Sequence record: NC_049850.1
Reading direction: 5' to 3' (one strand)
DNA length: 64,000 nucleotides
Each line of letters opens with the position of its first letter. The first letter of the stretch is position 1. Shown one piece after another: positions 7,729 to 63,464 of this stretch. The notes below the pieces were generated by a model, which was given only the letters and a program-made list of their open reading frames with translations, was not told the DNA's origin and searched no databases. Made by a program: the position numbers and the translations under genes.

Positions 7729-8037
7729 ATGCGATTGACAAAGACCGCCGTTTGTGCAATACTCACGGCCGCAGTACTTTCGGGCTGCGGAACCGCGCCG
7801 ACACCCAGCACACCGGTTCTCGTGAGCGAGAAGCAGTCGCTCAACATCGATCCGAAGTCGCTGGATTGCGACGGATTGTCAAAGCTTGATCCGTCCAAGC
7901 CATACGGTGAGAAAGAACAAGTCAAGGCCATCGAGGTATGGGCCAACGAGTTCGACACGTGCCGCCTGAAGTTCCGTGGGTTCGTCACCCTCGTCACCCC
8001 GCTCCTGCGCATCAACCAGCCTGCCGCTAGTAAATAA
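7729..8037 (+). CDS. outer-membrane spanin lipoprotein (Rz1-like)
   Basis: Signal peptide with lipobox LSG-C, Pro-rich linker and two further Cys. Confidence 0.72.
   Translation: MRLTKTAVCAILTAAVLSGCGTAPTPSTPVLVSEKQSLNIDPKSLDCDGLSKLDPSKPYGEKEQVKAIEVWANEFDTCRLKFRGFVTLVTPLLRINQPAASK
8027..8036 (+). promoter_or_regulatory. class A motif CTAGTAAATA
   Basis: CGCTAGTAAATAAG is identical at 8025 and 17524; it lies upstream of ORF 8075. Confidence 0.5.
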
Positions 8038-8074
8038 GAGTGGTAGCTACCCTATAACCCCATAGAGGATCAAC

Positions 8075-9373
8075 ATGTCTGTATCTGAAAACATCGACTT
8101 CCTGACGCCCGGCTCGGTCTGGCTTCGTGAGGCCGATGGCTCCGTAGCGAAGTTCCTGATGCTCACGAACACGAGCCTGAAGAAGAAAACGCAGGAGCAG
8201 CACCCGCCGCAAGTCATCTACGTTGACGCGCAGGGGAACTTCTACAACCGACGCGTCGAGGACTTCTTCAAGGTCTACACGTTCCACAGCGTCGACGGCG
8301 ACCTCGAACGTCGTCTCGAATCCCTGATCCAGTTCAACGAAGCTGATCTGGAGCACGTGCACGATCCGGAAGACGACCCGGTATCCGAAGTCGCTGACGC
8401 ACTGATCAACGAAGTCGTGGACGAAGTCCCGGGCGAGTTGAGCGCCCCTGCATTCGTGGAGCAGTTCGCAACGGACCCTAGCCGGTCCCTCAACGTGTAC
8501 TTCGGTCTGATCAAGAAGGAAGACACGCGGATGCCAGTGCTGTCGGCCGCCGACCTGAACGACGCGCTGGTCCACTACTCGCAGAACCCGAACCAAGAGT
8601 ACGGGGTCACCGAGCACCGCCTCATGTTCTCGCTCGGTGGCCCGGTCACCATCGAGAGCCTGACGGAAGCGTTCCACCCGAGCCTCGAAGTCAGCACGTA
8701 CGACTGGTTCGACGTGCACGCAAACGAGAAGTCGGAAGCCATCGTCTGGGAATCGTGGATCGGTGTCTACCCCGAATACTCGATCCGGGGCCTGTACGCG
8801 ACTGTCATCGTTGGTGTGCCTGACGCAAGCGCCACTGCCGCAGAAACTACCACGATGATGGAGACTCTGGAAGCCGCGAGCCGTGAAGGCAACCCGGTCC
8901 CGCTCGAAATGTGGACAGCAGCCGCAGGTGTCGATAGCGCGGCACTTCTGGCTGAAGTCGATCCTGCTGTGCACACAGCGGGGTACGCGCAGGCAGCGCC
9001 GCTTACGGTCCCGGCCGAGACGACGGAAGCCGAACTGAACGTGATGCAGCAAGCATTCATCGATGCGACGGCGCACGCGCAGCCCGAAGAAGTTTCGATT
9101 CCGGCAGCTACCATGAGCCAGACGGAAGAGATCGCGATGCTCGTCCAGAGCCTCGGTCTGACTACCGACGCCGCAAGCGAACTGGCAGCAGATGCTGAAG
9201 TCATGGCCGCAATCGCTGCGGTTCAGGCAAAACGTCGTGAAGGCACGATCACACTGCGCAACGCAGAGCCGGTATCGGACGTGACCGACGTGGAAGCCAC
9301 TGACATCGTTGTCGAACCTGCGTTCTCTCCTGAGACCGCAGCCGAGATCGGCCTGAACCAACAACAGCAGTAA
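8075..9373 (+). CDS. acidic hypothetical protein
   Basis: 432-aa ORF with GAGGA RBS; Ala/Glu-rich low-complexity C-terminal third. Confidence 0.75.
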   Translation: MSVSENIDFLTPGSVWLREADGSVAKFLMLTNTSLKKKTQEQHPPQVIYVDAQGNFYNRRVEDFFKVYTFHSVDGDLERRLESLIQFNEADLEHVHDPEDDPVSEVADALINEVVDEVPGELSAPAFVEQFATDPSRSLNVYFGLIKKEDTRMPVLSAADLNDALVHYSQNPNQEYGVTEHRLMFSLGGPVTIESLTEAFHPSLEVSTYDWFDVHANEKSEAIVWESWIGVYPEYSIRGLYATVIVGVPDASATAAETTTMMETLEAASREGNPVPLEMWTAAAGVDSAALLAEVDPAVHTAGYAQAAPLTVPAETTEAELNVMQQAFIDATAHAQPEEVSIPAATMSQTEEIAMLVQSLGLTTDAASELAADAEVMAAIAAVQAKRREGTITLRNAEPVSDVTDVEATDIVVEPAFSPETAAEIGLNQQQQ

Positions 9374-9387
9374 GCGGGTAACCGCAG

Positions 9388-9418
9388 TACCCGGGCCTCG
9401 TCCCGGGTATTTTTGTTT
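9388..9418 (+). terminator. intrinsic terminator
   Basis: TACCCGGG-cctcgt-CCCGGGTA followed by TTTTTGTTT. Confidence 0.8.
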
Positions 9419-10370
9419 AAGCCGCGTGCTTGCAGTTGTCGAAGTGGTGGCGCTCCATATTTTTGTTACCCGTGGCCCCACAGTGAGGACACGTCTTCAT
9501 TGGCGCGTCGCGGTGTTGCTGTAGCGACTTCAGGCGAATCTTTTCCTTGCACTCGTCGCTCATGGTTGGGCGCGTTGACGAGGATGCGTCGAAGTCTGGA
9601 TTCTGCTTGCAGTTATCAAAGTGCCACATCTTTGCCACGTTAAGCGCGACTGATTTGTTGCAGTGGGGGCATTCGACCTTTGGTCGACGCAGTGCTGCTG
9701 CTCGGATTTTCTCTGCGTGCTCAGCGCTTTTCGGCCCACGTAGTAGTTCTTTGGTTTCTTCAGAGCGCTTAATGCCAGTCATGCGCTCTCGCCATTCAGT
9801 TGATTTTTTCACACCGCGCCCGGCCGCTGACATCTTCATGCGTGCCTCTTCGGTGTGCTTGTATCCTGACGATCCAGCACCACCGGCACTGGCGTTAGTG
9901 AGTATGCCGCCATCCGCGTATCGACCAATGGATTCGATGATCAGGTCTTCGGCAGCAAAGGCCACGGCCTCGATCAGATCGCTGGACAGGCGCTGCACGA
10001 TCACGTCCAGACCAGCACCTTCTATCTTGCGCACCTTGGTGTGCTTGCGAGTTGGGCGAGTGGCTTTGCGGGATTCGGAGGTGTGCTGCCACATACGAGT
10101 TCCTTTGCCTTTGCCTATGTAAAACGGCTCGAACTCGAATTCGATAGTTTTCCCACGGGCCAGCTTGTAGCTATAGCTGCCCGGCTTACGCGGGTCCAGC
10201 AGTGCGTAGACGTAAAATTCACGCTTCAAGCTGAGTTTTCTGTTGACAGCAGCGTAAAAATCCGTATAGTGCGTGGCTCCCGCTATAAGAGCATCGCGAA
10301 ACGCCTTCGGCTTTACGTGCGCTGTCGTTGCGCTCAGTTCGGTAGCAAATTTCTGCTTGTAGTCTTTCAT
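9417..10370 (-). mobile_element. free-standing GIY-YIG (LEM3-like) homing endonuclease with NUMOD3 repeats and two CPHC zinc knuckles
   Basis: FYVYALLDPR...PFYIGKG motif; KHTEEARMKMS-type repeats; CPHC...HFDNCK twice. GGAG RBS before ATG 10370. It is the only minus-strand gene in this block. Confidence 0.75.
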
Positions 10371-10427
10371 AAGATTCTCCAGAGTTGTTACTGTTTCTAC
10401 TAACCTGACATGAAATTGAGGTTTCGC

Positions 10428-13041: not shown

Positions 13042-13433
13042 TGTTTAGCACCACCGCGTACCATTCGTCGAACTTCCTGTTCGATTTCCCCGTACAGGCA
13101 AAGGCTAACGCGAATCGTAAATACACAGATCGGCATGCCAATGGCCTTCTAGGTCTGTGGTGCTCCGTTACCGAGCGCGGGCGCTCCGCATTCGGACGTT
13201 ACCTGTATGAATTCGAGATCGACGCTGACTGGCCTTCGGTCCTGAACATCAAGTTGAGCACTCTGTTCGGGATCAGTGATCCGACAGAGTTGCGTGACTT
13301 GCGTAAGACTTGGCTCGATAATGGGACCAAGGTAGTGCGGCTTAGCGAGTGCGATCAGGTCTTTCAGGCCATTGTGCTCGATTTCCGCGTCATCAAAAAC
13401 TGGCACCTAGTTGCAGAGAAGCCGGTTTCCTGA
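13038..13433 (+). CDS. putative ADP-ribosyltransferase-fold protein
   Basis: AYHSS..FDF...GLWCS...FG.YLYE.EI and LDNG...IVLD..IK resemble ART-PolyVal-type domains. Confidence 0.4.
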   Translation: MMFSTTAYHSSNFLFDFPVQAKANANRKYTDRHANGLLGLWCSVTERGRSAFGRYLYEFEIDADWPSVLNIKLSTLFGISDPTELRDLRKTWLDNGTKVVRLSECDQVFQAIVLDFRVIKNWHLVAEKPVS

Positions 13434-13469
13434 TAGAATCATAAACAGGTTGGGAACTCCATTGGAACC

Positions 13470-13479
13470 CCAATTTTAT
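13470..13479 (+). promoter_or_regulatory. class B motif CCAATTTTAT
   Basis: CCCAATTTTATA is identical at 13469 and 28959; it lies upstream of ORF 13502. Confidence 0.5.
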
Positions 13480-13501
13480 ATTGGATAAAAACGGAGGTCC
13501 T

Positions 13502-14575
13502 ATGAGCTACAAGGGTGACGGTCGCGTAAAGCGCACATACGAGCAAGCAGTACAGGAACTTGCAGCACTTGGGCGCACGCTGATTTCCAGCGAGGCTGAG
13601 TACTATGAGTCACCGCGAACGGTCACGATTGGGTGCCGGTGCGGCGCTGTTCTGAAGCAGAGCGTTTCGGTGGCTGTGCGCGGAAAGGGGTTTTGCGTGG
13701 ATTGCCGCAAAACCTCGGACGCTGCGTCGAAGAGGTCAGTCGTGACCAAGGATGGTGTGTTTGCCACCGTAGCGGAGGCCGCTGCCTTCTACGGAATAGA
13801 CCACAAGACCGTGTATGCTCGTTTGTCAAGCGGATATTCTGACGCAGCGGCCGTGGGCCTTGAACTGCACGCAGCGGCCAACGCAAGTCGCGACCTAGAT
13901 GCTATCGGGTACGTGTACAAAATAACCAACACCGTTAATGGGCTAGTGTACATCGGTCTCACAACGCTGTCTGTAGCCGAACGCTATAAGGGCCACCTTG
14001 CCGCATGCAAAGATGGTATCATGCTGCCTATGTACATTGATATGCGAAAGTATGGGTATGATAAATTCCGTGTGCGTTGCTTGGCTAAGGTTCCTGTACG
14101 GGAACTGCCGGACACGGAACGGCGTCTCATAGAAAAGCACCACGCTACCGATCCGAAGTTTGGATACAACAGCGTGGCTGGCGGTAGTCTCGGTGGGACC
14201 GGGCTCGGCATGGCAGTTGAGTACGAAGGTCGCGTTTTCCACACCCGCAAGGCGTTCGCTAAGCACATAGGGCACGGATACGCAACCGTAACCGAACTCC
14301 TGAAGCTTGGCATGACACCAGTGCAGGTAGCGGAAGAGTGCGAGGCCCGTGCGGCGTCCACAGTGCAGGAAAAGCTGGCCAAGAAGCTGGGCCGAGCCGT
14401 AGTAATCAATGGTGTCGAGTACAACTCAATACGGGCGGCATGCCGCGCGCTCGGGGTAGACAACAACACCGTAACAAGGCGACTTCATCAGGGTTGGTCG
14501 CTTGAGTCCGCGTTTGATACGCGCAAATTCACACGCGGTGATTCACCGCACAACAGGAAAGCAGATGCAAGGTAA
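13502..14575 (+). mobile_element. free-standing GIY-YIG homing endonuclease with Zn ribbon and HTH (NUMOD1/IENR1-like) repeats
   Basis: GYVYKITNTVNGLVYIGLT motif; CRC/CVDC; repeated AEAAAFYGI / RAACRALGV helices. It overlaps the thyX start. Confidence 0.8.
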
Positions 14576-15500: not shown

Positions 15501-15544
15501 GGGCCCGGCGCTACGTAATTTGATTGGGTGAATAAGGAGGGCTT

Positions 15545-16216
15545 ATGCTCACACTACCCCAGATTGCGCAGCGCACGAGTGCACGACGTAAAGAGAGCGC
15601 TAAGTACGTGAAGATCACGTACCAGAAGCGTGGGTGGGATAGCCTCGGACGTGGCTATGTCGCCTGCGCCTCTTACTCGACCAAAATCTGGGACCCGTAT
15701 AAGCGGAAGTACGTTCGCAATACGCGGGGCCCCGGTGGTAAGCCGAGACGGTACGTGACTGTTATTGTTTTTCTTGACCCAAGGCTGCATGTTGCTGTAT
15801 CATGTAGCTGCCCAGACTTCCGCTATCGCTGGGAAGTCGCGTTGAACCGGAAACAAGCCGCCGAGATCGAATACTCGAACGGGGAATTGCCGGTAATACG
15901 AAATCCGCGCATGACCACCTCGTCTTGTAAGCATTTGTTCAAGCTTTACGAGACGATCAAACCTCAGCTTCCGGCCCGTCGCGCAGGCGACGATACGCCG
16001 CCGATTGCACCGCCCCAGATCGGGGTCGCACCGTCTCAGCTACGGAAGGTCGAGGAAGCGCGCCGCGCGGCCCTGAAGAACGCGGTTAAACCCGTGGTGA
16101 TCAAGGCTCCGACAAACGTGCAAAGGTCGGTCAAACCGGGCAAGAAGCAATCCACGCTGCCGCGCTCTGCCGTCGCGCCTATTGCGCAACGCATGAAGCA
16201 GAGAAGGAATAAGTGA
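15545..16216 (+). CDS. SWIM-type zinc finger protein with basic Pro-rich tail
   Basis: CSCPDF...CKH motif; AGGAGG RBS. Confidence 0.6.
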   Translation: MLTLPQIAQRTSARRKESAKYVKITYQKRGWDSLGRGYVACASYSTKIWDPYKRKYVRNTRGPGGKPRRYVTVIVFLDPRLHVAVSCSCPDFRYRWEVALNRKQAAEIEYSNGELPVIRNPRMTTSSCKHLFKLYETIKPQLPARRAGDDTPPIAPPQIGVAPSQLRKVEEARRAALKNAVKPVVIKAPTNVQRSVKPGKKQSTLPRSAVAPIAQRMKQRRNK

Positions 16217-17184
16217 TGAAAAGTTATGAACACTCAGCCTCGTTCTCGAAGCTGAAAAACATCACGGAGAGGATTAGCAAGAACCTGACGACGCTGGAAT
16301 ATCTCCACACGCTCGACATGTTCTTGTGGAAGGCGCTCGCGCCGATCCACGCGGAGTGTCCGTCGCTTTTCCAGAACTACGTGGCAAAGATTGTGGCACG
16401 GCAGACCCGCAAGGCGAGCCGACGCTTCACCTCGGACGACCGGACAAAGCTTCCGATTCACCTGTTCAACATGGTGACTACGAAGGACCCGAAGAAGGCG
16501 CACGAGCACGCACGTGCCATGCACCTGAATCGCGGTCTCATGTTCGGTTTCATCGCCCTGTTCTTCAGGCGCGTTGAACAATACGAGCACCTGCACACTG
16601 CGCTCGATCTCGATCCGATTGTTCGGAATTCGAAGATTTACGAGATCGAGCGCAGTATCGGCCTCCGTCCCGGAGCCGCGCTGTTCACGGCGGTGCAGGA
16701 GGCGCGCTTCTGGTACACGAAAGCCCGCAACTTCAAGAACATGATTCTTGAGAAGTACACGCGACTCGCGCTGATGCATGCGAAGACCACGTATAAGGAC
16801 TTCAACCACCACGTACGTCTGGATGACGTTATCCAGATTTACATGATCGTTGTGTCCCGGGCAATCGACCGCTGCGACGCGCGTCAGGGCGTGCTCACCA
16901 CGTTCATCACGAACTGGTTCAAGAGCGCGCGGTCCGAGGTCGCTGAAATGGCCAAGGATCAGGGTGATCAGTCGTACGAAGCACTGGTCGAGGAAATGGG
17001 GGACGCGAGTTCGGAGATTCTGGGCTCGACGGACGGAGGTCTGGGTGACGACATGCACGACCACATCGCGTATGTTGCCAAGCAGATCGACAAGCAAGGC
17101 TATGTCCGGGCCGCACTCCATATCCCCGAGCGGCTATCGAAAAAACAGCTTCAGATTCTTGAGGCATTCGTTCTGGAGGAATGA
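16213..17184 (+). CDS. phage sigma-70-family factor (region 2 present, region 4 apparently absent)
   Basis: ILEKYTRLALMHAK...DDVIQ...RAIDRCDARQGVLTTFITNWFKSA aligns to sigma region 2.1-2.4. Confidence 0.7.
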   Translation: MMKSYEHSASFSKLKNITERISKNLTTLEYLHTLDMFLWKALAPIHAECPSLFQNYVAKIVARQTRKASRRFTSDDRTKLPIHLFNMVTTKDPKKAHEHARAMHLNRGLMFGFIALFFRRVEQYEHLHTALDLDPIVRNSKIYEIERSIGLRPGAALFTAVQEARFWYTKARNFKNMILEKYTRLALMHAKTTYKDFNHHVRLDDVIQIYMIVVSRAIDRCDARQGVLTTFITNWFKSARSEVAEMAKDQGDQSYEALVEEMGDASSEILGSTDGGLGDDMHDHIAYVAKQIDKQGYVRAALHIPERLSKKQLQILEAFVLEE

Positions 17185-17185
17185 T

Positions 17186-17536
17186 TTGAGCAATCCGCTC
17201 GAACTGTCGGTGACGGCAATGAAATCGTTGCTTGCCGACTACGCGCTCCGTGCGAAGCAAGCTGAGGAAACCGCAGGACTGCTAATGGCCAAGACGCTGG
17301 ATGAGGTCGGCCGCCTGCACCTGTTCCAGTTGCTTCAGCAGCACATCGAGGCACGGGCCCACGACAGAGCAGTTCACCAGCAGGCCGTGATTCAAACCAC
17401 GTGCTTAGCACTCGCAACTGCGCTGTCGCAGGACGACGAATCCCTGCGTGACGCAGTGATACGCATCCACAAGAACCTGTCGCTCGCGGCTGATGCTGCG
17501 ATGCAAGTACCCATATCGGCCGACGCTAGTAAATAA
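17186..17536 (+). CDS. hypothetical helical protein
   Basis: TTG start after GGAGGA; this is the 3' part of ORF 16850. Confidence 0.5.
   Translation: MSNPLELSVTAMKSLLADYALRAKQAEETAGLLMAKTLDEVGRLHLFQLLQQHIEARAHDRAVHQQAVIQTTCLALATALSQDDESLRDAVIRIHKNLSLAADAAMQVPISADASK
17526..17535 (+). promoter_or_regulatory. class A motif CTAGTAAATA
   Basis: Upstream of ssb. Confidence 0.5.
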
Positions 17537-17583
17537 GGTCAGCAGTAGCAACAGCAACCAACCAATCGCAAGAAGGAAGAAGT

Positions 17584-19134: not shown

Positions 19135-19144
19135 GTAGTAAATA
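19135..19144 (+). promoter_or_regulatory. class A motif GTAGTAAATA
   Basis: Between ssb and recA, immediately before a terminator hairpin. Confidence 0.4.
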
Positions 19145-19153
19145 AAGTAGGAC

Positions 19154-19189
19154 AGAGCCCGGTAGGCAGAAGTCTATCGGGCTCTTTTT
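19154..19189 (+). terminator. intrinsic terminator
   Basis: AGAGCCCGGTAGGC-agaa-GTCTATCGGGCTCT (with GU pairs) followed by TTTT. Confidence 0.75.
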
Positions 19190-19216
19190 GTTTCCTAATA
19201 ACCGGAACATAGCTAC

Positions 19217-20713: not shown

Positions 20714-21411
20714 TGGGATACAATCCGCTCGTGCTCTCCACACGTGAAGAGCAAGAACAGGCGGATGACTTCCTGATGTCCCTGACGCAATTGGCACGGA
20801 CTACTACCAATCCGCAAGGTAGTTCTCCTATGCAAGAGATTGAGCGGAGACTAGCCGAGGCGCAGGCCCCGGAACAAAACGCGAGCGCTCCGGCCCCCCA
20901 GCGGGTACGACGTTCGCGTTTTTTCTATTCTCCGACCAAGAGCTTCAAGGAGGCCGTAGACGATGCTAAGGGGATTTCTGAACCGAAGTCATTGCCTGTT
21001 GAAAATGGTGAGATAAACGACCGGGCCGAGGCGTACGCGCGTGAACTCCCTGTCGCGCTCTCGGACAAGATCGCGGTTATACGCGAGTACCTGTTGAACG
21101 AGTGGGCACCGTCTGCGTTTGCGACGAGCGCGGCCACCGCACAGTTCATGGATGTTGCGCAACGTACACTTGGGACTGCCATCGACACGCAGCCCATGAT
21201 GAAGCTGCAACTCATGGTCGACAAGGCACTCACCGTCAAGATGGCTGAGTTCGTAGCCAAGTTCATGAATCTGGACCCTTCTCAGGCACCGGCACTAGCA
21301 GATCACGTGGCCCCCAAGAAGGAGGCCATCATCATCCATCCACATGACGACGAGCGCCGTCAGCGGCAGCGTCCAGCACCACGCAGAGAACGAGAAGATG
21401 AAGAAGATTGA
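20713..21411 (+). CDS. hypothetical protein
   Basis: 232-aa ORF between recA and terL, overlapping both. Confidence 0.6.
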   Translation: MGYNPLVLSTREEQEQADDFLMSLTQLARTTTNPQGSSPMQEIERRLAEAQAPEQNASAPAPQRVRRSRFFYSPTKSFKEAVDDAKGISEPKSLPVENGEINDRAEAYARELPVALSDKIAVIREYLLNEWAPSAFATSAATAQFMDVAQRTLGTAIDTQPMMKLQLMVDKALTVKMAEFVAKFMNLDPSQAPALADHVAPKKEAIIIHPHDDERRQRQRPAPRREREDEED

Positions 21412-23602
21412 CTATTCGAGGGTGACCGGCGTAGCTGATCATCTTGCGGAACTTGCCGAGTCGGGTGATTACAATCTGTTTCCCGGCCTCCTTTCGGACT
21501 CCGAAATGGAAGAGATTCAGCGTCGACGCGTGAAGGCAAAGCCGAAGGGCAAAGTCGCCACCGTGCGCGAAGACGAGTACATCATCAAGGGTGGCGGTGT
21601 CAGCGACGATGGTGAGGTCGTCGACGACTTTGACATCGCACGCTACATGGCAGAGGCCGAGGACAAGGAAACGGGCGTCCTGCACGATCTGAAGATCGAT
21701 ACGCGCGACATGCGCGCTGCCAAGAACTTCTACGACTACGCATTCAACATGCAGTCGGCAAAGGCAAACCCTCCGTGGTCGCGCCAGATGTGGGTTGGCC
21801 TGATGCTATTCGGTGAGGTGTGTCCACGCTGTTCGGATCACGACTGGCTAGACATTCACAACGTTCCGGTCGACTTCAAGGCCAAGGACATGCCGGATCG
21901 CCTACAGTTGCTGGAGTTCGGAAAGTGCCCGCGTTGCGGCTCCGACAAGTGGGACCTGATTCAAAACCACGGACTCCGAAACTACATGCAGTACGTGGGC
22001 GTGATCGGGCAGCGGGGCTCGAAGTCGTCGCTCACCGCACTCCTGTCCTCGTACTCGCTGCATCGGTTTGTCAAGTTCCCGAACTACGCATCGCTGTCGA
22101 AGTCGATGCAGGCGTCGACCGAGTTGACCGGCACGTTCGTATCGCTGACGTTTGCCAAGGCCGTTGGTGTTCTGTGGACTCCGTTCAAGAAGATCATCGA
22201 AGAGAGCGACTGGTGGAAGGGATTGTTCGATATCCTGAAGCATCACGGTAACCAGATGGGCACCGAGTTGTACACGATGTCGAGCCTGTACCTGACGCTA
22301 GGCTACAAGAACATACGATTCTACCCAAGCGGCCCGAAGTCGAGCACGCTGCGGGGGGACACGCGGATTCTTGCGGCACTGGACGAATTGGGTCTGTTCC
22401 CGCTTCCGACAGGAGATAGTGAGGAAGACGAAACAAGTGAACGTGCAAACTCGGACGAGGCGCACAAGTCGCTGTACAACAGTCTCGGTACTGTTTCGGT
22501 CACCTACGAAAACCTGCTGAAGGAAGGCGTATCCAGCGCACCGCCACCTCTGCTCTTCAACGTGTCGTCGCCGTACTCGCAGCGCGACAAGATGATGCGG
22601 CTGCTTCGGGAGGCGCGGACGCCGGACGGTGAGAAGGTGATGCTTGGCGTCAACCTCGCGACGTGGGAAATGAACCCGTTCTACACGCGAAACTCCCAGA
22701 TCATCGCACAGGCGTACGCAGCCAACCCCGAAAAGGCGGCTCGTGACTGGGGTGCAAGTCCTCCGGCCGTACACTCGCGATTCATCCATCCGGATACTGT
22801 GGGCGAAGGTGTGTTTGTTGGCGGTCCTAACGCTCACAACTTCATCTACCAATTCGACAAGCCGGGTGAGGTGTATGGGCGCATCGAGCGGGTACGCGGT
22901 AACCAGTGGCCGAGCATCATCGCTATCGACGCAGGTTCCTCGAACAACTCGTTCTGTATCGCGGCCGTGCACTACAACTTCGAGACCGGGAAGACGGTGG
23001 TCGGAACCGCACTCGAATGTATTCCGATGAACGGGAAGAAGGTAAACTTCAACCTGCTGTACCTGAACGTGATCCTGAAACTGGCGCGCGAAACGAATGC
23101 GGTTGGCATGGTGGCCGACCAATGGCAGTCGATTGATCTGTTGCAGCGTATCCGCGAGGACATGGGCCTGAATCCGCTCGGGAAACCCCGGTGCTTGCCT
23201 CGTCAGTACTCGCCACGTCGTAAGGACTTCGATGCATGTCGCGCGATGCTCACGTCGAAGAACCTGATTCTTCCGACAATCACCGAGTCTGATCGGGATC
23301 GGATTGTGGCGGGCGGTATCGACGATTACCGCTCTGAATTCATGAACCGTCCGGTTCCCCACATTCTGCACCAGATGATCACGGTGCGCGATGTGGGCCC
23401 CGAAAAGTGCCCGGAAAAGGGCGAAGGCTACACCGACGACATGTTCCGGGCCATCGTTTTGGGCTCTACCATCGTCCACCATCCGAGAGTGATGGAGCGT
23501 CTGGCAGAAGCGCGGAACTTCAACTACGGCGGCGACAACGGAAACCGTATGCCGGAACCCGGATTTGCTGGTCGCTCGGGTGGCTTCGGGGCACGTCGAT
23601 AA
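21398..23602 (+). CDS. terL: terminase large subunit
   Basis: Walker A GQRGSKS, Walker B AALDE, coupling motif VSSP, nuclease IAIDAG and TDDM. Confidence 0.8.
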   Translation: MKKIDYSRVTGVADHLAELAESGDYNLFPGLLSDSEMEEIQRRRVKAKPKGKVATVREDEYIIKGGGVSDDGEVVDDFDIARYMAEAEDKETGVLHDLKIDTRDMRAAKNFYDYAFNMQSAKANPPWSRQMWVGLMLFGEVCPRCSDHDWLDIHNVPVDFKAKDMPDRLQLLEFGKCPRCGSDKWDLIQNHGLRNYMQYVGVIGQRGSKSSLTALLSSYSLHRFVKFPNYASLSKSMQASTELTGTFVSLTFAKAVGVLWTPFKKIIEESDWWKGLFDILKHHGNQMGTELYTMSSLYLTLGYKNIRFYPSGPKSSTLRGDTRILAALDELGLFPLPTGDSEEDETSERANSDEAHKSLYNSLGTVSVTYENLLKEGVSSAPPPLLFNVSSPYSQRDKMMRLLREARTPDGEKVMLGVNLATWEMNPFYTRNSQIIAQAYAANPEKAARDWGASPPAVHSRFIHPDTVGEGVFVGGPNAHNFIYQFDKPGEVYGRIERVRGNQWPSIIAIDAGSSNNSFCIAAVHYNFETGKTVVGTALECIPMNGKKVNFNLLYLNVILKLARETNAVGMVADQWQSIDLLQRIREDMGLNPLGKPRCLPRQYSPRRKDFDACRAMLTSKNLILPTITESDRDRIVAGGIDDYRSEFMNRPVPHILHQMITVRDVGPEKCPEKGEGYTDDMFRAIVLGSTIVHHPRVMERLAEARNFNYGGDNGNRMPEPGFAGRSGGFGARR

Positions 23603-23614: not shown

Positions 23615-23624
23615 TCAATTTTAG
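23615..23624 (+). promoter_or_regulatory. class B motif TCAATTTTAG inside a 9-bp inverted repeat covering the ruvC RBS
   Basis: ATCCTCAAT (23611-19) pairs with ATTGAGGAT (23635-43). Confidence 0.55.
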
Positions 23625-27990: not shown

Positions 27991-28233
27991 ATGTACTCCT
28001 TTCTTGTGAACTCTAGCCGACCGGACCCCAACGATTTCAGTTGGCACGTTTACTCGAAAGCTACACCCACGGCAGTCAGCGCGAACCTCACGCTCGAAAA
28101 AGGCGTCAAGTTTGGGGTTCGCGCGCACCCGGTGTCGCAACACTCTGTTCAGGTGGTAGTCGCTGGTGCGTCGCGCGTCTATAGCGTGAGTGCCCACCGA
28201 CTTCCCCGCCTCTCCAAAGGAGCACGAAAATGA
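27991..28233 (+). CDS. hypothetical protein
   Basis: 80-aa ORF in the operon. Confidence 0.5.
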   Translation: MYSFLVNSSRPDPNDFSWHVYSKATPTAVSANLTLEKGVKFGVRAHPVSQHSVQVVVAGASRVYSVSAHRLPRLSKGARK

Positions 28234-28676
28234 AGCCGAACATTCTGCACTGGGGAATCGTGTACGACAGGTACACCCCGGCCGTCGAAGGGCAGATCGT
28301 TCGCGATCTGATCCTCGTCATCAATAAGGCACGTAGTGAGTACTCCGACGTAATCGTCGTGTGCGAATCCGATGAGCCGCGTCGCGCGGTCGAAGCTCTT
28401 GGCATAGACCTCGATAACACGGTTGAACTCGCGAAATACTGGGTGCAGTACAAGACAGGAGAGCGCTGGCCCCCGGTCCCCGGCAACGCCCGAGCCATCG
28501 TTCAGCGTGACCTGTATCAGAAGCCCGCAAAGGTACGTATGGACCCGAGCGGTCGTGACAAGGGCTTCTTCCTGCCAGAACAGGGGAAGCCAAACAACAA
28601 CTACCTGACGCTAAACCGGCCAGCGCCTAACGGCTATGCGCCGGTTGACCCGATTCTGGTGTCGTTGTGGACCTAA
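28230..28676 (+). CDS. hypothetical protein
   Basis: 148-aa ORF with AGGAG RBS. Confidence 0.6.
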   Translation: MKPNILHWGIVYDRYTPAVEGQIVRDLILVINKARSEYSDVIVVCESDEPRRAVEALGIDLDNTVELAKYWVQYKTGERWPPVPGNARAIVQRDLYQKPAKVRMDPSGRDKGFFLPEQGKPNNNYLTLNRPAPNGYAPVDPILVSLWT

Positions 28677-28685
28677 AGGACGATC

Positions 28686-28955
28686 ATGGAGATCAATGCA
28701 GCAACTCGTTTGGTGGCAACCGAGAAATGGAGCCACGATGTGCACACGAAAAAGCATCCGCCTGAGCACAAGTTCAGCGACGGCTCTGCCGAGTCGATTG
28801 CGGAATGGGCGCGCAAGTCGCACGGTGGCGACACCAAGAAGGCGATGGATTCGCTCAACTTCTACATCAACCGGGCCGGTCACAACCTGAGCGAAGAGCA
28901 GCGGTCGAAGGTCGAGCACGCCAAGAAGCTGTTGGGCGGCGGGGACAAAAAGTAA
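28686..28955 (+). CDS. DUF3175-like protein
   Basis: KWS..V...FS..SAESIA...AMDSLNFYINRAGHNL....LE.AK pattern. Confidence 0.65.
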   Translation: MEINAATRLVATEKWSHDVHTKKHPPEHKFSDGSAESIAEWARKSHGGDTKKAMDSLNFYINRAGHNLSEEQRSKVEHAKKLLGGGDKK

Positions 28956-28959
28956 GTTC

Positions 28960-28969
28960 CCAATTTTAT
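28960..28969 (+). promoter_or_regulatory. class B motif CCAATTTTAT
   Basis: Start of the intergenic region upstream of the tail operon. Confidence 0.5.
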
Positions 28970-28977
28970 AGCGGTAA

Positions 28978-29157
28978 TCCCGTGAGCGTATGGGACGTTT
29001 TTCTTCAGGCGAGTGTTGGTTTTGGGCCTGTACGCTGTTGTAGGAGAGGTCGTGCTTCGGCAGGCTGGTTCGCGGGAACCAGTTTAGACCTCTCCTTTCT
29101 TTTTGCCCCGGTGCTGGCAATCACCGTGAGGATCGCATATCTGCCAGCACAAAGGGC
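28978..29157 (+). ncRNA. candidate structured RNA or leader
   Basis: Four helical elements, including a 10-bp-closed three-way junction with a cUUCGg hairpin followed by a U tract. Confidence 0.45.
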
Positions 29158-29178
29158 CTCAGTATAAGCGAGCGCCAA

Positions 29179-30327
29179 ATGTCATATCTCTCCGACGCAG
29201 TATCAAGAGCTACCCAGCAGATTAAGACTGGCGTGAACTCACAAATTAGCAGACAGGTTCAAGGTATCAAGGGCGCAGTGTCCAGTGCCGAGAACGCTGT
29301 AGTAAACGCAGCGGCAGGTGTCGTAAATAATACGGTACGCACTGCTGTTGGCACCGCCATTGGCGCAGCCGCAGACCTATTGTCCGGTAACCCGGGAGGT
29401 GCGCTGACGACTCTGGCCAATGCGCCAGAAAAGATTTTGGGCTCTGCACTAGGCGGCCTAGGCGGCTTTGCCGGGCCTTCGTCACTGGACCTAACGGGCC
29501 CGGGGACGCTATCGGAAATGTCGAGTTCGGGTGGTATCAACCCGGGCGACAACTTGTTCGGTGCCCTAAACCGCACGGACCCGATGATGAACTACAGTTG
29601 GTACTGCCAACTTCCGGTGATCAGTCCGGGCTCCACGCAATCGGAATCTCCCACATCTGGTTCGATTCTCGGGAACTTGGCAGGTAGCCTAGGCAACATC
29701 CTGAAGTCGAGTATCGCAGGTTCCGTCAGCACGAGCGGAAGCGCGCAGCTTCCATGGTACTTCGTGGAGGGCGCTACGTGCCCGTTCCGTCAGTACGACA
29801 CGGTGACGATCTTCCGTGAGGGCCGAGACCGCAAGTACCCGTCGAAGTATTCGGTGGACAACCTGCAACTTACGATGTACGCGGACTCCGCAAACCAAAC
29901 CTTCCAGTACCTGCAAGCGTGGAACAACGCGATCCTGACGCCCTTCGGCGCGACGGCCGCTGCAACCATGGGCGGGGGCTGGGGACGCCCGAGCGACTAC
30001 AAGAAGCCGATCTTCATCTACCTGCTGGACGTTACGAATCAGGTAGTAGCCCTAATCGAATACGTGGAATGCTGGCCCGTGTCCGTCGAGCAGTACACAT
30101 TGGAGTCCGGCTCTAGCCAGCGTGTTGTCAACCGCGTGAACTTCTCGGTCGGTGACGTGTTCATCAACCTGATGGAAGTGTCGAGCGATCTGATCGGTGA
30201 GGTGCTGTACAACGCAGGTGCAAGTGCAGTGAACGCAGGTGTGAGCGCCGTGGGCGGTTTGGCCCAGCAAGGCTTGAACACCGCAATCAATTCCATGAGC
30301 GGCGCGCTCGATGGAATTTTCTCATAA
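29179..30327 (+). CDS. tail tube-fold baseplate protein (T4 gp19/gp54-like)
   Basis: DPMMNYSWYC, LQLTMY, YLQAW, DYKK.I, CWPVSV and VNFSV; Gly/Ala-rich termini. Confidence 0.6.
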   Translation: MSYLSDAVSRATQQIKTGVNSQISRQVQGIKGAVSSAENAVVNAAAGVVNNTVRTAVGTAIGAAADLLSGNPGGALTTLANAPEKILGSALGGLGGFAGPSSLDLTGPGTLSEMSSSGGINPGDNLFGALNRTDPMMNYSWYCQLPVISPGSTQSESPTSGSILGNLAGSLGNILKSSIAGSVSTSGSAQLPWYFVEGATCPFRQYDTVTIFREGRDRKYPSKYSVDNLQLTMYADSANQTFQYLQAWNNAILTPFGATAAATMGGGWGRPSDYKKPIFIYLLDVTNQVVALIEYVECWPVSVEQYTLESGSSQRVVNRVNFSVGDVFINLMEVSSDLIGEVLYNAGASAVNAGVSAVGGLAQQGLNTAINSMSGALDGIFS

Positions 30328-44644: not shown

Positions 44645-44654
44645 TCAATTTTAT
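44645..44654 (+). promoter_or_regulatory. class B motif TCAATTTTAT
   Basis: ATCCTCAATTTTA is shared with 23611; upstream of ORF 44737. Confidence 0.45.
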
Positions 44655-50599: not shown

Positions 50600-50609
50600 C
50601 TAAAATTAC
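50600..50609 (-). promoter_or_regulatory. class B motif GTAATTTTAG
   Basis: About 30 nt upstream of minus-strand ORF 50571; a second copy CCAATTTTAG at 50686-50695. Confidence 0.4.
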
Positions 50610-50643: not shown

Positions 50644-50729
50644 CTTCTGCGTGCCGCCTATTAATGTACCCATTGCATAGATACACTAAAATTGGCTGTT
50701 CGGTTATTGCCAATACAGGGCCCTATTCG

Positions 50730-54100: not shown

Positions 54101-54124
54101 AACCTTCTCCATGTTCTCTGGCTG

Positions 54125-54157
54125 CAATAAAATTGGGACGCCTCAGCGTCCCAATTT
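54125..54157 (-). terminator. intrinsic terminator overlapping class B motif (54127-54136)
   Basis: 12-bp perfect stem AAATTGGGACGC / GCGTCCCAATTT right after the stop of ORF 54446. Confidence 0.7.
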
Positions 54158-54158
54158 G

Positions 54159-54446: not shown

Positions 54447-54455
54447 ATGTTCCTT

Positions 54456-54821: not shown

Positions 54822-54835
54822 GGGCTACTCCGTGA

Positions 54836-57088: not shown

Positions 57089-57097
57089 ACGTATTCC

Positions 57098-58240: not shown

Positions 58241-58250
58241 TTGTTACTCC

Positions 58251-59546: not shown

Positions 59547-59559
59547 TGTGTATTCCTAA

Positions 59560-61884
59560 TTAGCCGATGACGCCGCCATCGATAGTCAAGTTCTGCAAGA
59601 ACGAAAGCGGAACTGCCGCGTCGCCTGTTGTCGGTGTGGTCAGCCCGTTCAGGACTTGACTACCCATGCTTAGCGGGCCCGTCATGGTCACGTTACCTGA
59701 AACAGGCACAGCGTTCACGTTTGCCGCCGTAAGCGAGACGTTGCCGCTACCGTTCGGGCTGATGCCGTTGACCGTCGACACGGTGCCTGCTGGAATCGCA
59801 GCGGTAACCGTGACCAACCCGTTAGCTTCGGAGAGCGTAACGTTTTGGCCTGCAACCAGCGACTTGATGATCGCGGAGTTTGCAGGCGGGCTGGATTCGA
59901 CGAGCAGTACAGCGCCTGTACCGGCTTGACCCGTGACCGACGTTATCGCGTTGGCGATGGATGGGACAACGGACCATCCCAAGTTCTGGCGCATGTAGCC
60001 GTTACCATCGTTCGGGGCCTCCGGAACGCCAGTCCCCGAAATCTGAATCGAGTTGCCTGTGTTCGACAGCGAAATCGCGGGGCCAGCCGTGAACGTGATA
60101 GCGCCAGTCAGCGCGCCAGACGTTCCTGCTGTGATGGACGAAACGCCGCCCGAAGCAGTCGACGCGATGGAAAGGTTCCCGTTCGCGTCAGGAGTGATAG
60201 TCACGCCAGAACCCGCAACCAGCGTCTTCAACTTGATGTTGCCGGTCGTCGAGCCGCTGTCGGAAATCAGCGAAGTGCCGGTTGCCCCGTTGTTGTTCGT
60301 GGCCTGCACAACGACCACACCGGTTTGTCCGGACACCGAAGCAACAGCACCGGTTGCCGAGATCGTGCCGTCGGCCGCGATGCTGATACCAGAGCCCGCC
60401 TTGACACCGCCTAGGTTCACACCGGTCGGTGCCGCAAGCGACAGGTTACCGGTTCCGTCCACAGTCAGACCGGCCTTGACGATAACACCACCGATGGTGC
60501 TGGTCGTAGCCGGGTTCAGCACTTGGTTCGCAGCAATCGTCAGCGTCTTGTTGTCGCCAGACGGCGTGATCGTGACGTTGGAGCCTGCGGCCAGCGACTT
60601 GATCGTCGCGATACCGCCCGCAGTCCCGTTGTTGTCCACCAGACCCGTGCCCGTGCCTTCGTTGTTCACTGCCGTCAGTGCGCCCGAGGTTGCTGTCGAA
60701 CTGATGGTGATGTTGCCGTTAGCGTCCGTGCCAAGCTGAATCAGGTTACCAGCAACCAGCGTCTTCAGTTTTGCGTTGCCGGTAGTCGACCCGTTATTGC
60801 TGATGAGCGACGTGCCTGTTGCAGCGTTGTTGTCCGTGGTCTGAATGACCACGACTCCGGTCTGGCCAGATACGGACTGGACATTACCCTGCGCATTGAT
60901 TTGCAGGTTGCCGTTCGGATCGGAGGCCAGCGTAACGTTGGAGCCAGCGACCAGCGTCTTCAACTTGATGTTGCCGGTCGTCGCCCCACTATCCGTAATC
61001 AGCGACGTGCCGGTTGACCCGTTGTTATTCGTAGCCTGAATGACAACGGCACCAGTTTGTGCGGACACCGAAGAAACCGGAGCCGGAACTGGTGCCGGGA
61101 CTGAGATCGTGCCGTCAGCCGTCACGTTGATGTTGGCACCGATCTTGACTGCGCCAAGAACTGTGCTCGATGCCACGGCCGACACGATCTTGCCGTCGGC
61201 ACTCAACTGAATGCCCTGATCTTGCGGGACATACACACCGCCTAGATGGGCCGCGTCCTGCCCCGCTGCCGGAAGAACGTACTGGTTTGCGCCCGTCAGG
61301 ACGAGGTTGCCTGATCCGTCTGGCGCGATGGTGATGCCAGAGCCCGCGACAAGCATCGCTAGACTCAAATTACCGGTTGTGGACCCATCGTTCTTGATGA
61401 GCGACACGCCGTTGGGAGCATTGTTGTCGACAAGCTTCACTACGACGTTGCCCTGCGGGTCCGGCGTCTGGTTGTTGACCGACCGAACGTCACCGGCAGT
61501 GTAGTTGGCCGTCGTCGTAGCCCCGTACACGGACCCATCGTTTGCGATGAACGTGGGGCCGCCCGGGTACTCGACACCGTTACGCCACACCTTCGAGCGC
61601 GTCGGGAGGCCCGAGTTGGGGTCCGTTACTTCGTAGAACAGATCGATTGCAGCACCGTCGATGATGCCTTGGCAGATCGCGGTGTACGGAAGGGCAAAGC
61701 GCCACCGGCTCTGGCCGATGTCATAGATGTACGCGCCCTTGTCACGACCCGGGCCCTCCGTGGACGCAAGGATAACCGCCTCGGCCGTAGGGTCGATCGG
61801 CAGCGTGTCCACAGTAGGTGCCACCACCGTGTTCGCCACCCCGTTTCGGTGTAGCGTCAGGGAGTAGTAAAAAGTGCTGTCCAT
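59560..61884 (-). CDS. long proximal fibre/anchor protein with internal repeats and foldon-like motif
   Basis: Repeated GTSLI.D.G.TTGNIKLKTLVAG; GVPEAPNDGNGYMRQNLGW; ends TIDGGVIG. Confidence 0.7.
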   Translation of the reverse strand: MDSTFYYSLTLHRNGVANTVVAPTVDTLPIDPTAEAVILASTEGPGRDKGAYIYDIGQSRWRFALPYTAICQGIIDGAAIDLFYEVTDPNSGLPTRSKVWRNGVEYPGGPTFIANDGSVYGATTTANYTAGDVRSVNNQTPDPQGNVVVKLVDNNAPNGVSLIKNDGSTTGNLSLAMLVAGSGITIAPDGSGNLVLTGANQYVLPAAGQDAAHLGGVYVPQDQGIQLSADGKIVSAVASSTVLGAVKIGANINVTADGTISVPAPVPAPVSSVSAQTGAVVIQATNNNGSTGTSLITDSGATTGNIKLKTLVAGSNVTLASDPNGNLQINAQGNVQSVSGQTGVVVIQTTDNNAATGTSLISNNGSTTGNAKLKTLVAGNLIQLGTDANGNITISSTATSGALTAVNNEGTGTGLVDNNGTAGGIATIKSLAAGSNVTITPSGDNKTLTIAANQVLNPATTSTIGGVIVKAGLTVDGTGNLSLAAPTGVNLGGVKAGSGISIAADGTISATGAVASVSGQTGVVVVQATNNNGATGTSLISDSGSTTGNIKLKTLVAGSGVTITPDANGNLSIASTASGGVSSITAGTSGALTGAITFTAGPAISLSNTGNSIQISGTGVPEAPNDGNGYMRQNLGWSVVPSIANAITSVTGQAGTGAVLLVESSPPANSAIIKSLVAGQNVTLSEANGLVTVTAAIPAGTVSTVNGISPNGSGNVSLTAANVNAVPVSGNVTMTGPLSMGSQVLNGLTTPTTGDAAVPLSFLQNLTIDGGVIG

Positions 61885-61889
61885 AGTTC

Positions 61890-62561
61890 TCACCACGTGA
61901 ATGCGGCGTTAGCCGAGTTGAGGCTTGGCATGCGTTGTTGAACAAGCTGTGTCAACGCTTCGCCCTGAGCCCCGTTTATTTTTTGTGTAACCGCCGTGTA
62001 TGCGTCCTGATCTGCGAGTGCGCTCAGCCCGTTCTGGCTCCAGTACCAACCGGCACTCATGAACAGATCGGCAGCTTGCGTCACAAGGTCAGGATTGCTG
62101 ACGACGCGCGTGTCCCCGTAGATGGCTTGGCTGTATGCCGTGTAGTTCGAGCGCCCCGTCAGGTGGAATGCACCTCGCCCGCGAAACAGCCAGCCATCAC
62201 CAGAAGCCACGTTGCCGTTGCCCATGCGCGAGGCATAGACCAGATTCGCAAGCTTCTGCGGGTTGCCAACATAGCTCGGCGCATACGCCTTGCTGGTATC
62301 GGCTTGGTTCATGGTGAACCGCGAAGGCCACACGGCGACCAGCCGTTCCGGCGTCGTGTAGTTCAAGTTCTCCACGAGCTTCGAGAAGCCCGCAGTCTCG
62401 TACGCGGCTTGCGCCATGAAATAACGCACACGGCGCGGACTCGCGTCGATACCGAATTTTGCCATCGCCGTGTTTGCTGCGTCTGCCATCCCCTGAAGCT
62501 GTGCGGCCGGAATTTGTGGCGCAAATTTTGCGAGTTGCGCGCTCGTGATTGCGTATGCCAT
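61890..62561 (-). CDS. glycoside hydrolase family 19 endolysin
   Basis: FMAQAAYET..F..L.ENLNY, GDGW.FRGRG..LTGRSNY and SAGWYW. Confidence 0.88.
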   Translation of the reverse strand: MAYAITSAQLAKFAPQIPAAQLQGMADAANTAMAKFGIDASPRRVRYFMAQAAYETAGFSKLVENLNYTTPERLVAVWPSRFTMNQADTSKAYAPSYVGNPQKLANLVYASRMGNGNVASGDGWLFRGRGAFHLTGRSNYTAYSQAIYGDTRVVSNPDLVTQAADLFMSAGWYWSQNGLSALADQDAYTAVTQKINGAQGEALTQLVQQRMPSLNSANAAFTW

Positions 62562-63025
62562 TAGTTCACCTCAAGAAATCCGATACGTGCGTCAACGACA
62601 CCGTTCTTGAAAGGATTGAATTTGTAGATCATCTGAACGTGCGCCGTGTACGTGCCGGGGCGCAGGTTAGGAACTACCAGATCGATCTTCTCAAAAGCGA
62701 AACCTTTGACCTCCACGTTCATGTGTTGCGGATACGTGTAGACGACGTTGCCTGCGGCGTCCGTCAAGAACACGTTGTAGACTGCACGTCGTTCGGTCTT
62801 GCTTTCGACGATGAGTGGTGGGTGGATAGAAACTTCGGACCCCGCACTAACTTGGTAGGTGTCCCTGATTGACACCGTTGTCTCTGGCGCGGGTTCGACG
62901 ATCCAGACACAGGCCAAGATCATGAGCACGACCATCACCCATGGCGATAGTCGTGTGATCCATTGATCGACCCATAGTCCGAAACCAAAAAGTGCGTGGT
63001 GGCCGTTTCCTGCGAGCGTCTTCAC
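62561..63025 (-). CDS. single-TM protein with periplasmic beta-sandwich, in the lysis cassette
   Basis: TM WVMVVLMILACVWIV; lies between holin and endolysin. Confidence 0.55.
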   Translation of the reverse strand: MKTLAGNGHHALFGFGLWVDQWITRLSPWVMVVLMILACVWIVEPAPETTVSIRDTYQVSAGSEVSIHPPLIVESKTERRAVYNVFLTDAAGNVVYTYPQHMNVEVKGFAFEKIDLVVPNLRPGTYTAHVQMIYKFNPFKNGVVDARIGFLEVN

Positions 63026-63026
63026 G

Positions 63027-63386
63027 TCATTCTCCTTTGTTTCCCTCAGTCGCCGGAGACTGGGCCGCGTCGTCCACCTTGAACCCCAGACTCTCCAAAC
63101 GTTTCGTGTAAAAGCTTTCGAACAGCGCGATTGCGCGTGTCCCCATGAGACCGGCCGTCGCGATCAGGATTGCTGCAATCGGCCCGTCGATGTTGAACCA
63201 CTCGCAAGCCCAGAACGTCATGAGACCCGCGAATCCCGCCGTGATCAGGTCGCGCACCAGCGTGACGAACCTGAAATCTTGCCCGTTGTTGAGGTACTTG
63301 ACTGCGCCTCCGAAAATCGCGAGTCCGAAAACCCACGCGTACGTGCTCAGTCCGTAGCCGAACGGGTCCTTGTCACCCTGAAACAT
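63027..63386 (-). CDS. holin (LydA-like)
   Basis: Two to three TM helices, LAIFGGAVKYL...AGFAGL...AGLMG; charged C-terminus. Confidence 0.78.
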   Translation of the reverse strand: MFQGDKDPFGYGLSTYAWVFGLAIFGGAVKYLNNGQDFRFVTLVRDLITAGFAGLMTFWACEWFNIDGPIAAILIATAGLMGTRAIALFESFYTKRLESLGFKVDDAAQSPATEGNKGE

Positions 63387-63425
63387 GATCGTGCTCCATG
63401 TCAGTCACTCCTAGATTAACCCGTT

Positions 63426-63464
63426 ATAAAATTGGCGAATCCCATAAAATTGGGCTAGTAAATA
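63426..63464. promoter_or_regulatory. divergent control region: two class B motifs (minus strand, 63426-35 and 63444-53) and one class A motif (plus strand, 63455-64)
   Basis: ATAAAATTGG twice and CTAGTAAATA, each pointing toward its flanking gene. Confidence 0.55.

Follow-up and report, generated by a model that had tools for sequence, protein, structure and literature searches.

Which factors switch on the operons of the jumbo phage BcepSaruman (NC_049850.1), and do the two short motifs that recur ahead of its genes mark the promoters that those factors read? BcepSaruman is a 263.7-kb myovirus of Burkholderia cenocepacia; among named phages of other genera, the Ralstonia phage phiRSL1 is the closest to it. 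We analysed a window of 64,000 nucleotides (nt), positions 1-64,000 of which are record positions 124001-188000, in which an earlier note had seen two oriented motifs, class A (TAGTAAATA) and class B ([CTG][CT]AATTTTA[TG]), and had paired them with the region-4-less sigma factor encoded there (gp239). That the motifs represent two temporal promoter classes is well supported by their position, orientation, association with gene classes and conservation across genera, these being the patterns from which we infer both promoter status and temporal order. Almost certainly class A marks the middle promoters, those of replication genes, and class B the late ones, those of virion and lysis genes. The best explanation of the whole, to which we give a probability of about 0.55, is a three-tier cascade in which a second sigma-like protein, gp159, would read class A and gp239 would read class B. 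Coordinates are those of the window throughout, except that positions in kb and those so marked refer to the record.

All four class A and nine class B sites of the earlier note lie exactly where it had put them, and each is oriented towards its downstream gene when checked against the annotation (Table 1). Class A occurs four times in the window against 0.06 expected, with four or more copies in 0 of 100 shuffles, and the nine class B matches compare with 0.27 expected. Genome-wide, with expectations from an order-1 Markov model, class A in the generalised form [T/C]AGTAAATA (YAGTAAATA) has 18 sites against 0.5 expected, 17 sense and 1 antisense, the antisense copy (record 71995-72003) lying on the boundary of a coarse strand block. 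The class B word [C/T]AATTTTA likewise has 18 sites, against 3.7 expected, 16 of them sense and 2 antisense, and at least one of the latter (record 187444) is also on a block boundary. Class B variants with A, C or G as the seventh base look functional, and the broader form [C/T]AATTT[T/A]A is enriched too; the earlier list of class B sites was sound in all that it contained but had overlooked two variants in the window, CAATTTCA and TAATTTGA. GTAAATA words within genes, at 13117, 29323, 38688, 40573 and 57464, have no YAG flank and look like chance occurrences. Both motifs were recovered without prior knowledge by enrichment of oriented intergenic k-mers; maximal-order Markov k-mer statistics absorbed the motifs and were uninformative.

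In five genomes each class consists of one conserved block of about 10 bp. Positions -45 to -12 carry no information in either class in these genomes, with neither a -35 nor a -30 element, which bears out what had previously been judged by eye. A weak purine patch lies 3-7 nt downstream of either motif. The distance from motif to start codon has a median of about 40-46 nt and an interquartile range of about 27-72 nt, many class B sites being tightly spaced at 22-36 nt.

A promoter is obligatory at divergent junctions and before solitary opposite-strand genes, because no transcript arrives there from upstream, and the motifs are found at both. At true divergent junctions they face outward: class A points one way and class B the other at 72 kb, class A is opposed by a host-type promoter at 112.6-113 kb, and at 187.4 kb (window 63426-63464) class A is directed to an exonuclease operon and two class B sites to the holin gene. 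At each of the five solitary opposite-strand genes (gp110, gp126, gp229, gp287 and gp321), class B precedes the start codon by 20-40 nt. The class B element also travels: BcepSauron has neither the homing endonucleases gp229 and gp236 nor their class B sites, and because gene and site are absent together, the mobile cassettes must carry the element along. Finer conservation relative to BcepSauron could not be resolved, since the flanks are 100% identical in this region, leaving the homing-endonuclease indels as the informative differences. These cassettes span 9417-10418 (gp229, minus strand) and 13470-14575 (gp236, of the GIY-YIG type); what BcepSauron has in their stead is an inserted HNH endonuclease, ahead of the DNA polymerase gene.

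The overlap of class A with upstream stop codons, described earlier as two proteins ending alike in A-S-K, is real (gp227 ends in AASK, gp240 in DASK). The phiRSL1 class A site before ssb likewise runs across the stop codon of the gene upstream, and because the register differs between phages the motif is not a coding artefact.

The two classes divide the genes by function. Class A heads the large helicase gp088, dCMP deaminase, a recombination endonuclease operon, a DEAD helicase, gp228, the operon of Dda helicase, DNA polymerase and primase, ssb, recA, the 5'-3' exonuclease, the beta clamp, the second DNA polymerase gene and a DnaB-like helicase. What follows class B sites is the tail tube and tail fibres, the major head protein and a virion protein, the head-protease operon and the tail/baseplate block, as well as the operon from resolvase to portal, the holin-antiholin-endolysin operon and both homing endonucleases. 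Counting operon heads of annotated function, class A has about 11 in replication or nucleotide metabolism and 0 structural ones, and class B about 9 in structure, lysis or packaging and 0 in replication.

This division extends well beyond BcepSaruman. We compared nine genomes (BcepSaruman, phiRSL1, BCSR5, Motura, Lu11, PaBG, PhiXhv-12, Illi-2 and GR7B), and in all nine, each of which bears the sigma gene, GTAAAT ranks first or among the first of the oriented upstream words, with a 5' flank specific to the lineage: YAGTAAATA in BcepSaruman, phiRSL1 and BCSR5, TCGTAAATA in Motura, CTGTAAATA in Lu11, PhiXhv-12 and GR7B, GGTAAATG or CTGTAAATAG in Illi-2, and GTGTAAAC in PaBG. Class B-like words are CAATTTGA in phiRSL1, CAATTTCA in Motura, TAATTTAA in Lu11 and PaBG, and AATTTTA in PhiXhv-12; BCSR5 gives a weak signal, and Illi-2 and GR7B show loosely similar words only. 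Two or more genomes contribute a site to each of 32 orthologue groups, of which 26 keep their class, against 13.5 +/- 2.5 when labels are shuffled within genomes (p ~5e-5), and 65 of 75 cross-genome orthologue pairs agree. The ssb gene has class A in five genera (BcepSaruman, phiRSL1, BCSR5, Motura and Lu11), and the gp228 orthologues of phiRSL1 (ORF249, an open reading frame, ORF) and Motura have it likewise. The resolvase has class B in three (BcepSaruman, phiRSL1 and Motura), one head-module protein has it in three genera, the holin has it also in Motura, and the phiRSL1 position orthologous to the head of the tail/baseplate block carries CCAATTTTA. The synteny of the sigma gene, ssb and recA is present in phiRSL1, Motura, Lu11, PaBG, PhiXhv-12, Illi-2 and GR7B; only its sigma-ssb part is seen in BCSR5, whose record starts there.

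A third and stronger class, gggtaTTGTTGACg-N17-TAnAAT, emerged from the same enrichment in about 21 near-identical copies at 1.9-28.5 kb, and its sequence is that of a textbook promoter for host sigma70. A relaxed pattern, TTGAC-N16-18-TAnnnT, finds 47 co-oriented, non-internal sites genome-wide, located at 0-30 kb, sparsely at 60-120 kb, and at 210-263 kb; the stretch from 120 to 210 kb has 0. Classes A and B together span 30-210 kb. The window holds the phage-specific classes only, and therefore the earlier reader saw no -35 element.

Of the two sigma-like proteins, gp239 is the recognised one. Its gene stands where it had been reported, at 16213, except that the annotated start is 16216, the GTG at 16213 being one codon upstream. 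It matches Pfam Sigma70_r2 at E 0.0065 (16.7 bits, below the 24-bit cut-off), TIGR02937 at E 0.0014 (also below cut-off) and PHROG 17569, 'RNA polymerase sigma factor', at E 3e-74. The AlphaFold2 (AF2) model has a pLDDT of 85.6 and its top Foldseek matches are all sigma70 chains; residues 23-246 superpose on the Escherichia coli sigma70 fragment 1sig_A with Z 12.1 and a root-mean-square deviation (rmsd) of 4.0 A over 218 residues (VIA), followed by many sigma2 domains. The earlier description of a sigma factor with region 2 only was right in that regions 3 and 4 are absent, but by fold match the protein also has region 1.2, an insert like the non-conserved region (NCR) of sigma70, a linker and a conserved tail. 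No structural match reaches past about residue 259, and the tail searched alone gives no Pfam match to region 3 or 4 even at E 10. The last 70 residues comprise a disordered acidic linker (265-277) and then three short helices ending in a conserved Q[RK]x[ILV]L..F.LE. Relatives of this protein of about 322 amino acids (aa) number at least 173, many on contigs of 200-250 kb, and homologues in named phages go down to about 20% identity. There is no match to the gp55 family, and the T4 gp55 chain 7d7d_F is outside the top 50 fold matches. Neither a six-frame Pfam search nor a hidden Markov model (HMM) of the family revealed a hidden paralogue of gp239.

The second protein, gp159, is encoded outside the window and annotated as hypothetical. 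Its homologue, PaBG gene 112, had been named as a weak second sigma candidate (HHpred 97%; PMC7412058). The family comprises at least 65 proteins on contigs of jumbo-phage size. Its model has a pLDDT of 88.6, and 11 of the 13 best fold neighbours are sigma factors at Z 7.2-8.7 (VIA), several of them spanning residues 115-331: ShbA scores Z 8.7, sigma28 Z 8.5 over residues 118-331, and T4 gp55 (7d7d_F), at rank four, Z 8.1 with rmsd 2.2 A over 81 residues. A language-model atlas places gp159 next to viral Sigma70_r2 clusters with a score of 0.95, and the nearest named clusters carry Sigma70_r2 or r4. We consider it probable, with some confidence, that gp159 is a sigma factor. Both families are present as one copy each in all nine genomes. 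The gp159 gene follows RNA ligase and topoisomerase genes, and the adjacency of topoisomerase and sigma-like genes recurs in Lu11 and PaBG.

The cascade that we propose would run on host RNA polymerase core. Host sigma70 would read tier 1, the roughly 47 host-type promoters in the arms of the genome. Tier 2 would be class A, a -10-only promoter of replication, recombination and nucleotide-metabolism operons and, in relatives, of the gp239 operon as well; it would be read by gp159, itself made from host-type promoters. Tier 3 would be class B, a -10-only promoter of virion, packaging and lysis genes that travels with homing-endonuclease cassettes, read by gp239, which would be made from class A and act as the functional analogue of T4 gp55. 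Because there are two phage sigma-like proteins and two phage-specific classes, one each is the simplest bookkeeping, and it is most likely that each protein reads one class. Which reads which can be said only tentatively: that gp239 reads class B we hold at slightly under even odds, and that it reads class A we judge to be distinctly less probable, the remainder going to a bipartite sigma or other schemes. The phylogenetic profile does not discriminate, as both sigma families and the GTAAAT core are present in 9/9 genomes.

Gene order provides one argument for the assignment. The gp239 gene lies in a class A-headed operon in 7 of 8 relatives, and the nearest intergenic promoter upstream of gp159 is host-type in BcepSaruman, Illi-2 and PaBG, which is the order expected of a cascade. 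Motif shape provides another. In sigma70 recognition of the -10 element, the A at -11 and the T at -7 are flipped out by sigma2 together with region 1.2. By analogy, [C/T]AATTT, with A at position 2 and T at position 6, would fit this register and suit gp239, whereas class A would not. The resemblance of the sigma2-like domain of gp159 to gp55 and to extracytoplasmic function (ECF) sigmas, set beside that of class A to the T4 late box, would favour the pairing of gp159 with class A, and the precedent of T4, in which a region-4-less sigma serves late genes, would favour that of gp239 with class B.

Several observations weigh against this cascade. Class A has no -35 element for the sigma4-like domain of gp159 to read, and it ends in TAAATA like the T4 late promoter box, TATAAATA. 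The nearest sites upstream of gp239 in BcepSaruman itself are class B variants, and the gp159 homologues of phiRSL1, BCSR5 and PhiXhv-12 have class A as their closest upstream site. For gp159, Foldseek gives E values of 0.4 or worse, searches of Pfam, NCBIfam and PDB sequences give no match, and a profile comparison shows no similarity to gp239; fold Z scores of 8-9 are middling evidence for a helical protein. Finally, a terminator-like hairpin with a T-run lies between the class A site and the gene at 5 of 28 BcepSaruman sites, recA included. Such hairpins after class A sites are rare in relatives, and the order probably reflects terminators of upstream genes packed against the next promoter, yet it remains awkward for a promoter. 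The sequencing runs found by search contain only small shares, as contigs, from which RNA starts cannot be read, and the phiMatilda time course consists of later points, without mapping of start sites.

The claim of the earlier note that gp239 reads at least one class is plausible. The pairing that the note implies is the converse of ours: gp239 would read class A, because of the likeness of TAGTAAATA to TATAAATA, and class B would be left to gp159 or to some other factor. In its favour, the last six bases are common to class A and the T4 box, no other motif is as conserved as the GTAAAT core, which accompanies the gp239 family in 9/9 genomes, and every close relative has class A directly after the sigma operon and before ssb; moreover, in T4 a protein with sigma region 2 only reads late promoters of the -10-only kind (PMC7892883). 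However, gp159 is also present in 9/9 genomes, so that co-occurrence is undiscriminating, and gp239 would need to switch itself on, because class A precedes its own gene in 7 of 8 relatives. The genes headed by class A are those of replication and not late ones, and the gp239 sigma2 domain is nearer to group-1 sigma70 than to gp55, 7d7d_F ranking fourth for gp159 and falling outside the top 50 for gp239. With gp159 in the picture this pairing is not the better supported one, and we regard it as rather unlikely. A different division of labour, which seems to us improbable, would make the sigma itself bipartite: gp239 would melt DNA and read the -10 element while gp159 or gp238 sat on the beta flap, like T4 gp33, for one class, and host sigma70 with a phage activator or appropriator would serve the other. 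T4 offers the precedent in gp55, gp33 and the sliding clamp (PMC7892883); gp239 has no flap-binding region 4 and gp159 does have a sigma4-like C-terminal domain; gp238 is an overlapping neighbour of the sigma gene kept in 9/9 genomes; and class B, with its A at position 2 and T at position 6, may resemble a sigma70 -10 element. But gp159 has its own sigma2-like domain (2.2 A rmsd to gp55), superfluous in a pure flap-binder, no conserved activator box lies upstream of either class, and a search, not exhaustive, detected no homologue of AsiA, MotA or gp33.

The remaining alternative is that the motifs act in RNA, as processing sites, 3'-end modules, stop-codon cassettes or translational enhancers. 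Strand-specificity of both motifs would be expected of such elements, class A often overlaps an upstream stop codon and is sometimes then followed by a hairpin and T-run, and many class B sites keep a tight spacing of 22-36 nt from the start codon. Yet divergent junctions and solitary opposite-strand genes, which receive no upstream transcript and must have a promoter, also have sites; the register of stop-codon overlap varies between phages; and start-codon distances as a whole are broad. We rejected class A as a 3'-end or terminator module as a general explanation on the ground that hairpins follow 5/28 sites in BcepSaruman and almost none elsewhere. An action in RNA is thus very improbable.

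Table 1. Motif sites, sigma-like genes and their neighbours (window coordinates unless marked as record).
Feature	Position	Strand	Context
Class A TAGTAAATA	8028..8036	+	38 nt ahead of gp228; overlaps gp227 stop codon
Class B variant CAATTTCA	10411..10418	-	40 nt ahead of solitary minus-strand homing endonuclease gp229
Class B CCAATTTTAT	13470..13479	+	22 nt ahead of GIY-YIG homing endonuclease gp236
Class B variant TAATTTGA	15516..15523	+	21 nt ahead of gp238
gp238	15545..16216	+	no family assignment; overlaps sigma gene start; immediate upstream neighbour of sigma gene in 9/9 genomes
gp239, sigma-like factor	16216..17184	+	regions 1.2, NCR-like insert and 2 (residues 23-249), linker 265-277, tail 278-322
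gp240	17186..17536	+	small ORF, 1-nt gap after sigma gene; kept beside it in phiRSL1, BCSR5 and Motura
Class A TAGTAAATA	17527..17535	+	48 nt ahead of ssb (gp241); overlaps gp240 stop codon
Class A TAGTAAATA	19136..19144	+	72 nt ahead of recA (gp242)
Hairpin (8-bp stem) and T-run	19154..19190	+	between class A site and recA; read from sequence
Class B TCAATTTTAG	23615..23624	+	24 nt ahead of Holliday-junction resolvase gp245; operon continues to portal gene
Class B CCAATTTTAT	28960..28969	+	heads tail/baseplate gene block
Class B TCAATTTTAT	44645..44654	+	directly after terminator hairpin, ahead of gp267
Class B GTAATTTTAG	50600..50609	-	28 nt ahead of gp271
Class B CCAATTTTAG	50686..50695	-	second site upstream of gp271
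Class B CCAATTTTAT	54127..54136	-	27 nt ahead of gp275
Class B CCAATTTTAT	63426..63435	-	ahead of holin-antiholin-endolysin operon
Class B CCAATTTTAT	63444..63453	-	tandem second holin site; back to back with class A at 63456
Class A TAGTAAATA	63456..63464	+	21 nt ahead of operon of gp285 and 5'-3' exonuclease; divergent junction
gp159, sigma-like protein	record 85717-86712, outside window	-	annotated hypothetical; homologue of PaBG gene 112

The neighbours of the sites merit some comment. The order motif-hairpin-recA (19136-19190) is common to phiRSL1; the hairpin is terminator-like and probably ends the ssb transcripts, and a promoter firing into a terminator suggests, as read from the sequence, control of recA by attenuation or antitermination. 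The large terminase gene (21344-23602) lacks a separate class B site and overlaps the gene ahead of it in the class A-headed recA operon, and it may be expressed with the replication genes and not with the late genes. An annotation gap of 560 nt follows the class B site at 28960, within 28955-30327. The ORF 29179-30327 (382 aa) exceeds the annotated coding sequence 29518-30327, and the BcepSauron annotation divides the region differently; a gene start, or an additional small gene, may be mis-annotated here. The counterpart of gp271 in BcepSauron is annotated as 'tail fiber protein'. For gp238, family scans and the protein atlas give no function, and we name it as a candidate partner or cofactor of the sigma factor.

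Two observations concern the early region. Many transcripts of record positions ~3500-27500 (minus strand), downstream of TTGTTGAC promoters, would share a conserved leader, some 30 nt long, at their 5' ends, either a variant of catcgattcaacgaacccgaaggggaacg...ATG or a second type, cactttcaacgca..., which could be a shared 5' untranslated region or a translation-initiation element. At the edge of this region, record 28202-29498 is a gene-free gap of 1.3 kb with host-type plus-strand promoters at record 28291 and 28552; no tRNA was found in it, and it may encode a non-coding RNA or adjoin an origin or terminus.

The phage encodes a DnaN-like beta clamp (gp301) and a clamp loader, and the C-terminal motif of T4 gp55 binds the sliding clamp (PMC7892883). 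By analogy the conserved tail of gp239 might dock on the DnaN-like clamp, so that class B transcription would be coupled to replication and gp159 would serve the middle class. We regard this extension of the cascade as doubtful; if true, clamp docking would be a convergent or ancestral form of clamp-activated transcription common to a supergroup of jumbo phages without their own RNA polymerase. The map makes it conceivable that a beta clamp links late transcription to replication in the T4 manner.

More generally, the analysis provides a testable regulatory map for this little-studied supergroup, which includes phiRSL1, Sarumanvirus, Motura and the Lu11/PaBG, Xanthomonas and Vibrio lineages. 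The map comprises three promoter classes, two conserved regulons, one recognised and one cryptic sigma-like factor and a conserved partner gene, gp238. It corrects the view that the group has one or zero sigma factors (compare PMC7824862), and its compact 10-bp middle and late promoters may be of use in engineering Burkholderia phages. What precedes it is the Lu11 record (NC_017972), whose depositors labelled class A sites 'putative middle/late promoter'; our literature search found no publication describing these motifs for the clade beyond that annotation. The Lu11 feature is the class A form aaaaCTGTAAATA, or ...GTAAATG before ssb, and its syntenic position after the sigma operon is that of BcepSaruman. 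However, the Lu11 annotation recognises a single undivided 'middle/late' class and does not contain class B (TAATTTAA), the two conserved regulons or a second sigma.

Temporal cascades of phage sigma factors and -10-only late promoters are classical, in T4 and SPO1. What we believe to be new is the three-class map, the finding that nine genera conserve the A and B regulons, the domain layout of gp239, and the recognition that gp159 is probably a second sigma. The nearest protein comparison for gp159 is with ECF (group 4) sigmas: its model suggests a two-domain fold of sigma2 and a sigma4-like domain, its neighbours include ShbA, sigma28, SigE, sigmaH and sigmaL, and the family consensus resembles ECF regions 2 and 4. 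It differs in an extra N-terminal domain of about 115 residues, in a beta-hairpin insert and in having no Pfam or NCBIfam match, and neither promoter class has a -35 motif.

As systems, the closest parallels are SPO1 and T4. The SPO1 cascade passes from host sigmaA to gp28 and then to gp33/gp34, and BcepSaruman would resemble it in having early promoters for the host sigma followed by two successive phage specificities, the earlier tier expressing the later factor. However, SPO1 middle and late promoters are bipartite, with -35 and -10 elements, whereas both classes here are without a -35, and the proteins are unrelated in sequence. The likeness to the T4 late system lies in -10-like promoters without -35 conservation, in the separation of late genes from replication genes, in the presence of a phage sliding clamp and clamp loader, and in the build of gp239, like gp55 a sigma2-type body without regions 3 and 4, with a flexible linker and a conserved C-terminal segment (PMC7892883). 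By contrast with gp55, gp239 is nearly twice as long, has a sigma70-like region 1.2 and an NCR-like insert, and has no sequence match to the gp55 family; the BcepSaruman clamp is of the bacterial DnaN type and not a gp45 trimer; a search that was not exhaustive identified no gp33 homologue; and where T4 has one class of -10-only promoter, BcepSaruman has two.

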